A DNA stretch of 64,000 nucleotides from Octopus bimaculoides (lineage: Eukaryota), in contig NC_068982.1 in NCBI RefSeq assembly GCF_001194135.2, positions 121,110,146 to 121,174,145 of the forward strand. Direction: 5' to 3'. The notes beneath the pieces were generated by a model. It was given only the letters and a program-made list of their open reading frames with translations. It searched no databases and was not told the DNA's origin. Every line of letters begins with the position of its first letter. The first letter of the stretch is position 1. This document shows, one piece after another, positions 33,901 to 50,816 of this stretch. Position numbers and translations under genes: made by a program.

Positions 33901-36079
33901 GAGGAACTAATGAAGAGAGAGTAGTAGGGAAGGGAGTAATGGAGAGAGGGAGAGAGAGAGAGAGCAATAGGAGAAGGTTTGCTTTTTAATACTCTTTATT
34001 TTAAATATATCAAAACTTAATAGTAGGATAGATTAGTATGTATTCATATCCATATATAATTAGTCTCATTGCTAAATTAGGTCCATGTTAAGGCCACATG
34101 ATTTTTTTTTTCTGGCAGCTTTGAATGGGGCTCAAACTGACTGGTTTTGTTGTTAGTTAACAATTTATTAGCATTTCTTTATCCCTCCCTTCTAAACTAC
34201 CAGATAATATTATGGAAGGTTACTTATTAAAATGCCAACAAGATTTTAAATAGTACAAGTTATATAATCCTGATGAACTGTTAAAGAAAAAACAACAAAA
34301 ATGCTTTGTTCAGTTCTAATTCCAAGCTGCAATAAAGGCTCTCTGGTCTCATCATAATGCTTAATTTCATGACAAATCTAAATAACTAGATATGGCCCAA
34401 GCCATATTTGTCTATCTGTATAGAGCCCCCCCTCTCTTTTTGTCTATCCACACTTCAAGTATCTATTGAATAAGTTGTCTCTTACCATGAGACCAGACAT
34501 ATGAACAAGTTAATTTTTCTGTATGGTTTTAAAAGCTGTTACACTACATTTGTCTTTTGTTTTAGTCAGGAACCTTATTGTCTGTTTGTTTGCTTATTGG
34601 TAGTTGTCCACCTTAAACAGATGCTGCTTTTCTCTCTAGTGAACTTTCATTGATTTAGAACCAGTCTTCCTATATACTATCTATTCATTGTATATATTGT
34701 AACTCATTCCATATAGTATTCATCTGTCATAAGCTTAGATAGTAAATATATCACATTGTTGTTTATTATAATAGTGTATGATGCATCTTGAAGATCGTCT
34801 ACAAGAGATCTACTTCAAGAGTATGATGTTGGTAGAATATGCTCATGGAATTAACAAACCCTCTATGAAAGAACTGACAACAATGTTGGGGTAAGTATTC
34901 TCACCTTTACTAATTTTAGACACTATATAGATCTGCTCTTTAGAATCTCTTGCTTGCTGGCTTCAATCTTTATATCTACCTGTAAATGGTGTTTAGCTGT
35001 GGGGTTAACATACTAGATACTAATCTTTTTGCCTCAGTCTGTTTTACTCTACAACACATGTCCCATCTATCTCATACTTGAGTAAATGGCTTCTAAATTG
35101 TTATGGTTGTTCTAATAATTTATAACTAATTGCAAAATTAGCAAAACAGCTAATATATAAACAGCAACAATTATTAAAAAAACGGTAATTTAATTCGCTG
35201 CATATAAAATGAAAATTTGGGTATTTTTGCCTTTGTCGTAGTTGTCAAGTAACTCCAATCAGTTTTAATGAGCCCCACCCCCAAGCAAGAAGTTGCTTGG
35301 TCAGTTTCTAATCAAACTCATTCTGCTTTCCTTGAGGAGCTTCTGGTCCTTAAGCTCTTTACTCTTTAGCATTCAGATTATTCTGTCAAATGTCATCATC
35401 ATCATCATCATCATCATCATCATCATCATCATCATTTAACGTCCGCTTTCCATGCTAGCATGGGTTGGACGATTTGACTGAGGAATGGTGAACCAGATGG
35501 CTACACCAGGCTTCAATCCGATTTGGCAGAGTTTCTACAGCTGGATGCCCTTCCTAACGCTAACCACTCAATGAGTGTAGTGGGTACTTTTACGTGCCAC
35601 CGGCACGAAGGCCAGTCAGGAGGTACTGGCAACGGCCACGCTCGAAATGGTGTATTTTACGTGCCATCTGCACAGGAGCCAGTCCAGCGGGACTGGCAAC
35701 CTCATAGCTTTGAGAGTTCAATGATGTGATGGTTTTAAAATGATATTGTAGGGTAGGTGTTTGAGGCTAGATCTGGCCAGGTAGAATATTTTGGCCAGAT
35801 GTGGCTGGTTTAAATGCTAAAGGGTTAAAATGTGGTTCTCATTTCAAGAATAAGGTGTTTGTTGACAGTGATTTTGCTACATTAAAAAGACAAAATGTAG
35901 AAATTTTCTTGTTGACATATTTAATTTGTAGACATCATGTATAGTTAACCTCTACTTTTTGTCATCTTTTAGAATATATTTTAAAAATGCTTCTTTTCTT
36001 CCTTATTTTCAGGTTTGATGCCAGTGATATTCCATTGCTATTAGCTGTGGCATCAACTCATTCCAGCCAAGCTGCTTGA
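3846..36079 (+). CDS. FNIP1/2: Folliculin-interacting protein (FNIP1/2 orthologue), 5'-partial multi-exon gene: join(3846-3908 and/or 4360-4422,14228-14328,14826-14891,17047-17129,19408-19476,21277-21431,21665-21747,21886-22006,22952-23124,23972-24089,24329-24381,24854-25732,29440-29553,30483-30651,31522-31583,33157-33283,34775-34890,36013-36079)
   Basis: All exons are bounded by AG/GT and chain in one frame (2619 nt with one copy of the 63-nt exon, ending TGA). Recognisable FNIP motifs: [108 protein letters not shown]. Start codon and N-terminal exons not found. Confidence 0.95.
4360..4422 (+). CDS. FNIP1/2: FNIP candidate exon, copy B (63 nt, phase 0-0): [21 protein letters not shown]
   Basis: tctttttccag acceptor and CTA|gtaagc donor; 56/63 nt identical to copy A; open in frame 0. 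Confidence 0.7.
5770..5919 (+). repeat. 38-bp minisatellite, 4 identical copies running into an N-gap
   Basis: Unit gtgagtgatggttagagattgggcttgaggtgaaagta at 5770, 5808, 5846, 5884; no spacers. Confidence 0.95.
10690..11315 (+). mobile_element. RTE LINE 3' end joined to a family-B SINE-like tail
   Basis: Degenerate RxxWYxH...[12 protein letters not shown]...WRYAV at 10700-10915; internal sub-repeats; ends in the catggacattgttaaatgatga tail shared with family B. Confidence 0.75.
14228..14328 (+). CDS. FNIP1/2: FNIP exon [34 protein letters not shown]
   Basis: ttcacag|TAT ... CTTAG|gtac; 101 nt; FNIP_N motif GSVAMxYKG. Confidence 0.95.
14826..14891 (+). CDS. FNIP1/2: FNIP exon [22 protein letters not shown]
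   Basis: tacag|A ... GGCAG|gtatgt; 66 nt, phase 2-2; matches SPPQLMLSKVF. Confidence 0.93.
17047..17129 (+). CDS. FNIP1/2: FNIP exon [27 protein letters not shown]
   Basis: tttcag|T ... ATAG|gtaagt; 83 nt; needed to bridge phase 2 to phase 1. Confidence 0.85.
18802..19010 (+). mobile_element. SINE family B ((GAT)n-tailed), well-conserved copy
   Basis: gccagtaccgcctgactggc...ggcgttaggaagggcatccagctgt...catgctagcat...gttaaacgatgatgat; near-identical reverse copy at 35393-35700; fragments near 570-635, 26022-26180, 38515-38635, 53563-53630 and elsewhere. Confidence 0.9.
19408..19476 (+). CDS. FNIP1/2: FNIP exon [23 protein letters not shown]
   Basis: tttccag|CC ... TCAA|gtaagt; 69 nt; HSxPMDMP ... 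DSG motif. Confidence 0.92.
20887..21020 (-). mobile_element. tRNA-derived SINE family C
   Basis: tttcagtttccgtctaccaaatccactca...gaaccatgtggttg...; related copies at about 9075-9230, 15640-15780, 40735-40815 (minus) and 51555-51680, 53405-53500 (plus). Confidence 0.8.
21277..21431 (+). CDS. FNIP1/2: FNIP exon [52 protein letters not shown]
   Basis: tgtcag|TT ... GAT|gtaagt; 155 nt; FPSP, SSY, RRWxRxQxTSLE motifs. Confidence 0.92.
21665..21747 (+). CDS. FNIP1/2: FNIP exon [28 protein letters not shown]
   Basis: ttccag|ACA ... AATAG|gtagtt; 83 nt; phases 0-2 fit neighbours. Confidence 0.88.
21886..22006 (+). CDS. FNIP1/2: FNIP exon [40 protein letters not shown]
   Basis: tttctag|C ... GAG|gtaaga; 121 nt; FFFxHxPLFExH motif. 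Confidence 0.93.
22952..23124 (+). CDS. FNIP1/2: FNIP exon [58 protein letters not shown]
   Basis: ctatag|GGT ... CACTT|gtaagt; 173 nt; LYTxPRxxEPVWL motif. Absent from the ORF track. Confidence 0.94.
23972..24089 (+). CDS. FNIP1/2: FNIP exon [39 protein letters not shown]
   Basis: tttcag|C ... TGG|gtcagt; 118 nt; [13 protein letters not shown] motif. Confidence 0.95.
24329..24381 (+). CDS. FNIP1/2: FNIP exon [18 protein letters not shown]
   Basis: ctacag|TTG ... CTAGG|gtaagt; 53 nt; conserved [12 protein letters not shown]. Confidence 0.96.
24854..25732 (+). CDS. FNIP1/2: FNIP large exon [21 protein letters not shown]...LSYFIRCSE followed by a Ser/acidic low-complexity linker
   Basis: ttccag|A; 879 nt open frame overlapping the 278-aa ORF; donor GT|gtaagt at 25733 (an alternative GT exists at 25731). 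Confidence 0.93.
27797..28014. mobile_element. TTAA-flanked piggyBac-like MITE
   Basis: ttaa|cctttttgttacc ... ggtatcaaaaggg|ttaa terminal inverted repeats. Confidence 0.7.
29440..29553 (+). CDS. FNIP1/2: FNIP exon [38 protein letters not shown]
   Basis: ttgtag|G ... CCAAA|gtaagt; 114 nt, phase 2-2; ELPMP precedes the NFGRSL exon as expected; the 5' boundary is ambiguous (second AG at 29415-29416). Confidence 0.8.
30483..30651 (+). CDS. FNIP1/2: FNIP exon [56 protein letters not shown]
   Basis: tttcag|G ... CAG|gtagta; 169 nt; NFGRSLL, DFVL motifs. Confidence 0.95.
31522..31583 (+). CDS. FNIP1/2: FNIP exon [21 protein letters not shown]
   Basis: tttcag|CAC ... GAATG|gtgcgt; 62 nt; LDEPIxEAVCI motif. 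Confidence 0.95.
33157..33283 (+). CDS. FNIP1/2: FNIP exon [42 protein letters not shown]
   Basis: ttacag|G ... TTT|gtaagt; 127 nt; VxxASS ... SPxF motifs. Confidence 0.92.
34775..34890 (+). CDS. FNIP1/2: FNIP exon [39 protein letters not shown]
   Basis: aatag|TGT ... TTGGG|gtaagt; 116 nt; [14 protein letters not shown] motif. Confidence 0.96.
35393..35700 (-). mobile_element. SINE family B with long (ATC)n tail, nested in a TTAA-ended MITE
   Basis: Reverse complement of 18802-19010; flanked by ctttagcattcaga (about 35364) and aatgctaaagggttaa (about 35813-35828). Confidence 0.85.
36013..36079 (+). CDS. FNIP1/2: FNIP terminal coding exon [21 protein letters not shown]
   Basis: ttttcag|G; SDxPLLxAVASTHS C-terminal motif; TGA at 36077-36079. 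Confidence 0.95.
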
Positions 36080-50700: not shown

Positions 50701-50816
50701 AGTACTCCTCAGAATTTGCAAAATTGTGGAACTATTTTAAATATCAGTCCAATCCATCAGTGAATTACACATCCGAGGACTCACAAAGTAAAGAAATTAG
50801 ATTCAAGAGAAGATGA
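47370..50816 (+). CDS. PLD6: Mitochondrial cardiolipin hydrolase / piRNA endonuclease zucchini (PLD6, mitoPLD), join(47370-47781,50539-50816), 229 aa
   Basis: N-terminal hydrophobic anchor (YLGILTGTIIYLYLI), VLFFPD, Cys/His zinc-wing segment, ARKSIDICVY, single HKD motif HHKFVIID and GSFNWT; phase-1 intron CAAG|gtaagt ... ttccag|GT; 690 nt including stop. Confidence 0.95.
48258..48629. mobile_element. Foldback MITE with 9-bp TSD (Mutator-like) inside the PLD6 intron
   Basis: TSD ataatatgg at 48249-48257 and 48630-48638; termini GGCGGACGTAAAGAAT / ATTCTTTACGTCCGCC; about 50 bp of perfect inner inverted repeat around the N-gap. Confidence 0.88.
50539..50816 (+). CDS. PLD6: PLD6 exon 2 (HxKxxxxD catalytic motif, GSFNWT)
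   Basis: tattccag acceptor; IMVRTDKTQFLMHHKFVIIDSKIVCSGSFNWTSDAITVNHEHL; TGA ending at 50816. Confidence 0.95.

Follow-up and report, generated by a model that had tools for sequence, protein, structure and literature searches.

In Octopus bimaculoides, the gene for folliculin-interacting protein (FNIP) lies directly upstream of PLD6/Zucchini on the same strand. The arrangement recalls that of vertebrates, in which PLD6 stands beside FLCN, the gene for folliculin. We studied this locus in a window of 64,000 nucleotides taken from the sequence CM046602.1 (GCA_001194135.2), a stretch of AT-rich animal DNA with six runs of N. We consider it likely that FNIP and PLD6 are two ordinary, intact and separately transcribed genes that became neighbours through the reorganisation of the coleoid genome, and that the resemblance to vertebrates is independent and most probably coincidental. 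The linkage itself is real and dates from the coleoid ancestor, with three independent assemblies in agreement. If our reading is right, the locus is a small and clear case in which the coleoid reshuffle broke an old gene pair, TVP23-PLD6, and made a lasting FNIP-PLD6 neighbourhood.

Identification of FNIP and PLD6 in the octopus

FNIP is folliculin's partner in the Rag GTPase-activating complex. In the window, residues 67-917 of the protein are encoded on the forward strand between 14219 and 36079, in about 17 exons. The gene was recognised from Pfam and PDB matches, from its conservation in Argonauta and from tblastn searches with P0127, the octopod FNIP representative of 917 aa, whose residues 67-917 were placed on 14219-36076. 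Three Pfam domains follow each other along the strand in the expected series FNIP_N (E=2.6e-11), FNIP_M (E=2.5e-39) and FNIP_C (E=1.4e-60). Among PDB sequences, the 177 C-terminal residues match human FNIP1 (8je2_H, E=1.1e-45), and the FNIP2 chains of solved FLCN-FNIP complexes (6ulg_N and 6nzd_I) match the C-terminal region with E about 1e-42. The exons are 87-98% conserved at the amino-acid level between Octopus and Argonauta. The last coding exon, at 36005-36079 on the forward strand, ends in ...THSSQAA followed by a TGA at 36077-36079, which agrees with the gene end that a first, sequence-only reading of this DNA had placed at 36079. A search of the readable window with P0127 did not find the exon or exons for residues 1-66, which are encoded either upstream of the window or inside the gap 5920-6322.

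PLD6/Zucchini (MitoPLD) is an HKD nuclease and cardiolipin hydrolase of the mitochondrial outer membrane. The octopus gene is on the forward strand and has two exons. The first (47370-47781) runs from the ATG through a putative hydrophobic N-terminal anchor and the conserved C/C/C/H residues into the PLD-like domain. The second (50539-50816) supplies the single catalytic HKD motif, HHKFVIID, and continues to the C-terminus and its stop codon. Spliced together, they reproduce the annotated LOC106874083 (P0001, 229 aa) at 100% identity, so that the start at 47370 given by the sequence-only reading is exact; the distance of 11.3 kb that it gave corresponds to 11,291 bases between the stop codon of FNIP and the ATG of PLD6. 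The single intron between the exons (47782-50538, GT...AG) contains an assembly gap (48369-48532) and measures 2,757 bp as assembled, with the Ns counted, against about 2.7 kb in Argonauta. Its position is common to all eight orthologues compared in this respect (Argonauta, oyster, Solemya, chiton, limpet, Lingula, Ptychodera and Owenia).

The protein has the features of the family. In an alignment of 15 orthologues, residues H151, K153 and D158 of the HKD motif are invariant, as is H70, and C51, C61 and C66 are nearly so; the three cysteines and H70 are putative zinc-binding residues. Residues 5-23 (TSSFYLGILTGTIIYLYLI) are hydrophobic, as judged by eye. Both Pfam PLDc_2 and PLDc match the protein, the matches being assigned to exon 2. 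Its best PDB relatives are structures of mitochondrial cardiolipin hydrolase (4ggj, E=1.7e-32 over residues 40-205; 9lkx, E=1.8e-29; 4gel, E=4.7e-14), and the bacterial Nuc (1byr) matches more weakly (E=9e-11). By its sequence, the octopus gene is an intact PLD6/Zucchini orthologue.

At its C-terminus the octopus protein is extended by about 25 residues that end in ...EIRFKRR (50750-50816) and that the PLD6 of Argonauta lacks. For mammalian PLD6, work that cites Raiff et al. reports recognition by FEM1B through an arginine close to the C-terminal end of the degron.

The FNIP-PLD6 linkage is shared by coleoids

The sequence-only reading had allowed that the linkage might be confined to one octopus lineage. 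This is not the case. In Argonauta hians, 5.8 kb separate the end of FNIP (917 aa, with FNIP_N, FNIP_M and FNIP_C) from PLD6, which follows it on the same strand. For squid, the linkage can be read from the published catalogue of Schmidbaur et al. 2022 (PMC9023564; Nat Commun 13:2172), where blocks 14211 and 14210 are paired in the sheet 'Cephalopod' of Supplementary Data 1. The first is a block of Euprymna scolopes (Lachesis_group9:12,041,203-12,703,847) with one unannotated gene, three PLD-like genes, FNIP, ECSIT and RhoGEF. The second is a block of O. bimaculoides in an older assembly (KQ420004:29693-241633), which has FNIP and a PLD-like gene on one scaffold. The species in the network of these blocks are OCTBI and EUPSC only. 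Blocks were defined there by at least three orthologues, separated by at most five intervening genes, that occur together in Euprymna and in at least one octopus, and the analysis of 27 species gave 505 cephalopod-unique blocks when about 2 were expected by chance (PMC9023564).

The FNIP-PLD6 block is thus already catalogued as a cephalopod-specific microsynteny, and the adjacency itself is not new. Our locus resembles the published blocks in that a PLD-like gene and FNIP are linked in both octopus and squid, with no such block outside cephalopods, and in that old genes were relocated rather than new genes born. What differs is the treatment: the block appears in that paper only in the supplementary table, and neither the break with TVP23 nor the vertebrate FLCN-PLD6 parallel is discussed. 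The window carries only FNIP and PLD6 of this block; ECSIT and RhoGEF lie outside it and are known from the published table.

The squid block differs in gene number. Three PLD-like genes stand in a row beside FNIP in Euprymna, one of which carries fused gag-protease and zinc-knuckle domains, and Octopus and Argonauta have one each. The triplet may have arisen by a tandem expansion, specific to squid, of a nuclease of the piRNA pathway, or it may be a transposon chimera.

PLD6 is paired with TVP23 in six of nine non-cephalopods

We read the neighbours of PLD6 orthologues in annotated assemblies, taking flanks of 10 kb on each side and the Pfam families of the called genes. The comparison covered nine non-cephalopods: Lingula anatina, which the sequence-only reading had named as informative, and Crassostrea virginica, Solemya velum, Patella caerulea, Liolophura sinensis, Ptychodera flava, Owenia, Hydractinia and Daphnia. 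The match in Acropora is on a metagenome contig of only 2.5 kb, which holds no synteny information. None of the nine species has a gene with FNIP_* or Folliculin Pfam domains within 10 kb of PLD6. The neighbour is a gene of the family DUF846, which we take to be TVP23/FAM18, in six of them, and the neighbours are unrelated in the other three (Owenia, Hydractinia and Daphnia).

TVP23 lies upstream of PLD6 on the opposite strand at about 0.36 kb in the bivalve C. virginica, 0.16 kb in the bivalve S. velum, 0.27 kb in the limpet P. caerulea, 0.84 kb in the brachiopod L. anatina and 6.2 kb in the hemichordate P. flava. In the chiton L. sinensis, PLD6 is nested inside the annotated span of TVP23. 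The head-to-head pair is most simply ancestral for bilaterians, because it is common to one deuterostome and several lophotrochozoans, and the two genes probably share a bidirectional promoter. A PPR gene adjoins them in oyster and chiton. Searches of the literature for TVP23 with PLD6, or for PLD6 with microsynteny, returned no discussion of this pair. We regard the pair, widespread in bilaterians and broken in coleoids, as the most useful by-product of the analysis.

PLD6 may once have belonged to a larger neighbourhood. In both Lingula and the chiton, STK19 follows closely downstream of it (region 15571-21161 of the Lingula locus and 21051-23539 of the chiton locus, with PLD6 at 10001), and in Lingula a gene for a DXO/Rai1-type nuclease stands beside STK19. 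In human, STK19 and DXO adjoin each other in the major histocompatibility complex class III region, which is what hints at such an old grouping.

In the octopus locus, the TVP23-PLD6 arrangement has been replaced. A search of the window with all the outgroup loci found no exons of TVP23, PPR or STK19, so that TVP23 is absent from the 47 kb before octopus PLD6 and from the 13 kb after it. The pair is gone from Octopus and Argonauta, and apparently from Euprymna, where DUF846 and PPR are found together in another cephalopod-only block (block 13848, group9:117.49-117.70 Mb; PMC9023564). Both it and the PLD-FNIP block (group9:12.04-12.70 Mb) are on one chromosome, about 105 Mb apart.

A rearrangement in the coleoid lineage would account for the locus

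These observations can be put together in a simple scenario. The bilaterian ancestor would have had TVP23 head-to-head with PLD6, often with PPR beside the pair. In the coleoid lineage, PLD6 would have been cut from TVP23 and PPR, which stayed together, and would have landed downstream of FNIP, in a block with ECSIT and RhoGEF. Judging from gene order, and assuming that the squid PLD-like genes are PLD6 orthologues, the simplest event would be an intrachromosomal rearrangement. Since the conserved intron was kept, PLD6 presumably moved as genomic DNA and not as a retrocopy. Transposons would later have filled the space between FNIP and PLD6, which now measures 5.8 kb in Argonauta and 11.3 kb in Octopus. 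Which way PLD6 moved, and how, are inferred from gene order.

The interval between the genes contains transposons and a probable FNIP 3' end

The interval from FNIP to PLD6 is free of gaps, with no run of N between 19134 and 48368. The sequence-only reading had recognised only transposon debris in it. This is a fair description, to which a probable end of the FNIP transcript can be added. When the Argonauta and Octopus intervals were compared with blastn, a single stretch proved conserved (38094-38393, forward strand, 78% over 309 nt), matching positions 6661-6944 of the Argonauta locus; the other intergenic DNA has been turned over completely. It starts about 2 kb beyond the FNIP stop, includes a CT-rich tract and ends about 20 nt past a conserved AATAAA (38368-38373). 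The block is non-coding, because the Argonauta matches fall in several reading frames. It is probably the end of the FNIP 3' untranslated region with its polyadenylation site, and it may possibly hold regulatory sites too. Transcription of FNIP would then probably terminate about 2.3 kb after the stop codon and roughly 9 kb before PLD6. The conservation of a block with a poly(A) signal suggests that FNIP and PLD6 have separate transcripts and, together with the 9 kb of transposon debris that follows it, speaks indirectly against read-through from one gene into the other.

The remainder of the interval includes several repeats. A decayed DNA transposon of the pogo/Tigger type lies on the reverse strand at 40922-42805 (Pfam DDE_1, E=6e-16 and 8e-12), its transposase split over several frames. 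A decayed mariner of the Mos1 type, also on the reverse strand, occupies 45471-46555; frame-shifted segments of its transposase read as mariner-like, and the call is supported by HTH_48 alone (E=1.4e-12), the catalytic fragments having no Pfam match. A putative LINE-tail fragment (LINE, long interspersed element) at 44393-44563 has no Pfam match either. Two interspersed families are also present. One is an element of about 130 nt resembling short interspersed elements (SINEs), at 38511-38636, which recurs in the interval and in FNIP introns. The second family is represented at 39585-39798, with further copies at about 1927, 2644, 2949, 51000 and 53015. Other copies of the SINE-like element, on both strands, are at about 577-640, 9017-9060, 11170-11320, 16078-16202, 18850-19010, 26020-26186 and 35413-35580. 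Numerous copies in the Argonauta locus mark the element as an old octopod repeat family.

The vertebrate parallel is most likely a coincidence

The sequence-only reading had made PLD6 the immediate neighbour of FLCN in human, on the same strand. The two human genes share a strand. The adjacency stands in the literature: clinical genetics papers give the order in human 17p11.2, the Smith-Magenis interval, as MPRIP-PLD6-FLCN-COPS3. Human FAM18B (TVP23B) belongs to the same 2.6-Mb interval of 17p11.2 as PLD6 and FLCN, and the TVP23-PLD6 pair looks loosened in human. The human/mouse 17p11.2 arrangement is like that of the octopus in having PLD6 directly beside a subunit of the FLCN-FNIP complex, with TVP23B still nearby, and unlike it in that this neighbour is FLCN and not FNIP. 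Because the outgroups show neither adjacency, FLCN-PLD6 in vertebrates and FNIP-PLD6 in coleoids arose independently.

The sequence-only reading had granted that a single instance is compatible with chance, and this is the best-supported view. Rough estimates put the number of 'neighbour of partner' coincidences expected by chance at tens per genome of 20,000-30,000 genes, assuming a handful of complex partners per gene and two neighbours per partner. Many gene pairs are implicitly screened when such a resemblance is noticed, and one FNIP-PLD6 instance is therefore no evidence of selection. The parallel with vertebrates is then most likely a coincidence. The more general lesson is that one neighbour coincidence between phyla, taken without outgroups, is no proof of ancestral linkage.

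Several points weigh against our explanation of the locus. Flanks of 10 kb would miss an FNIP or FLCN located further away in the outgroups, and this limit is most serious for the larger genomes, those of Solemya and Ptychodera, with few neighbours or none inside the flanks. The direct comparison covered Octopus, Argonauta and the nine non-cephalopods, a set with no vertebrate, amphioxus, sea urchin, Nautilus or squid. The evidence from squid comes from a supplementary table with Pfam labels, in which the orthology of the three PLD-like genes to PLD6 is assumed. Had the test been specified beforehand, the chance that a relocated PLD6 lands beside the single FNIP would be small, about 2 in 20,000-30,000 genes (roughly 1e-4, again a rough estimate). 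Finally, recent papers report that in mammals CUL2-FEM1B has both FNIP1 and PLD6 among its substrates, at the outer membrane of mitochondria, which makes a functional linkage conceivable.

Alternative explanations

The alternative that survives best is convergent selection, by which PLD6 was retained next to FLCN in vertebrates and next to FNIP in coleoids because shared chromatin or a shared enhancer couples nutrient and redox sensing at the surface of mitochondria with PLD6 activity. We think this unlikely. It would fit the persistence of the linkage since the squid-octopus split despite the turnover of the intergenic DNA, but neutral retention may have the same effect once rearrangement slows. 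Schmidbaur et al. argue that cephalopod blocks are constrained and match topological compartments (PMC9023564), which would favour selection in general; here, each lineage offers a single instance, with a partner gene that is not the same, nine other animal lineages have no such linkage within 10 kb, and the poly(A) signal that closes the only conserved sequence of the interval points to separate transcripts. The functional argument comes from mammals, where CUL2-FEM1B, recruited to mitochondria, is reported to degrade both FNIP1 and PLD6; at the outer membrane of these organelles, protein import is gated by FNIP1 and fusion is controlled by PLD6. Against it stands the implicit screening of many gene pairs, for which tens of chance coincidences per genome are roughly expected.

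A more specific form of this idea is that PLD6 was independently captured and kept beside a FLCN-FNIP subunit in vertebrates and coleoids because the shared regulatory context would couple FLCN-FNIP signalling with the mitochondrial dynamics that depend on PLD6, which would make it a convergent microsynteny driven by function. We hold it to be quite improbable. If the adjacency were functional in both lineages, it would tie genome architecture to the newly described mitochondrial control of FNIP1 and PLD6 by FEM1B. Co-regulation, which the sequence-only reading had offered as a second possibility, has a low prior probability; the sequence of the octopus window gave no support for it, and the observations made at this locus do not require a functional linkage.

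The sequence-only reading had also proposed an ancestral FLCN-FNIP-PLD6 cluster in the bilaterian ancestor, split reciprocally so that each lineage kept a different half. Both adjacencies do involve subunits of one complex, and the presence of Euprymna PLD6 on the chromosome of its old neighbour TVP23 leaves room for an ancient FNIP-PLD6 linkage at the scale of chromosomes. At the scale of microsynteny, the cluster is largely refuted, by a condition that the sequence-only reading had itself laid down: within the 10-kb flanks, none of the nine non-cephalopods links PLD6 to FNIP or FLCN, TVP23 is instead the upstream gene in a hemichordate, a brachiopod and four molluscs, and the 27-species analysis has the block in cephalopods only (PMC9023564). 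We therefore consider this cluster very improbable, and return to the relocation of PLD6 within coleoids as the preferred explanation.

An assembly artefact, be it a mis-scaffolded FNIP-PLD6 join or a PLD6 wrongly put together across a gap, can practically be dismissed even though the window has six runs of N and one of these is inside PLD6 at the centre of an inverted repeat, since the stretch between the FNIP stop codon and the start of PLD6 contains no Ns, the independent Argonauta assembly has the same order and strand, the genes share one scaffold in the older O. bimaculoides assembly and one block in Euprymna, and the PLD6 intron agrees with its orthologues in position and length.

The gap in PLD6 (48369-48532) is wholly within the intron and leaves the coding frame untouched. 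Its two sides belong together, because splicing across it gives a complete product from an intron whose position agrees with the orthologues and whose length is near that of Argonauta. The gap is centred in an inverted repeat with arms of 61 nt (48295-48355 and 48533-48593) that are 97% complementary, with poly-A and poly-T on the sides towards the gap. The 40-nt core of the repeat has no second copy in the window. The structure is either two retroposon-like copies placed tail to tail or a palindromic artefact of the assembly, the centre of an inverted repeat being a typical break point.

Further features of the window

The FNIP exons lie on the forward strand at the following approximate positions. 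The first part of the gene has 14219-14329, ~14776-14850, 17045-17131, 19407-19475, 21273-21437 and ~21662-21730. The middle part has ~21900-22006, ~22950-23125, 23973-24092, 24329-24409, 24834-25730 and 29440-29556. The end of the gene has 30481-30651, 31519-31590, 33161-33283, 34775-34891 and 36005-36079. A word-indexed search with a large, weakly conserved exon of this gene gave one homologue only and was of no use for finding orthologues.

A cysteine-rich string, QCVSCCYC, in the open reading frame 29246-29554 resembles the cysteine degron of mammalian FNIP1. We rejected this candidate: the string is the translation of a polypyrimidine tract (…tgttgttattgtag) ahead of the real exon at 29440-29556, and by eye the motif was not seen at the matching place of the P0127 linker, after YFIRCSE.

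Scans of the whole window with Rfam and for tRNAs gave zero matches. Near its end, two almost identical open reading frames for zf-RVT reverse-transcriptase tails (63184-63567 and 63685-63999, reverse strand) are associated with a gap of 10 N (63761-63770), which they are noted to flank; they are either a duplicated LINE fragment or a duplication in the assembly.

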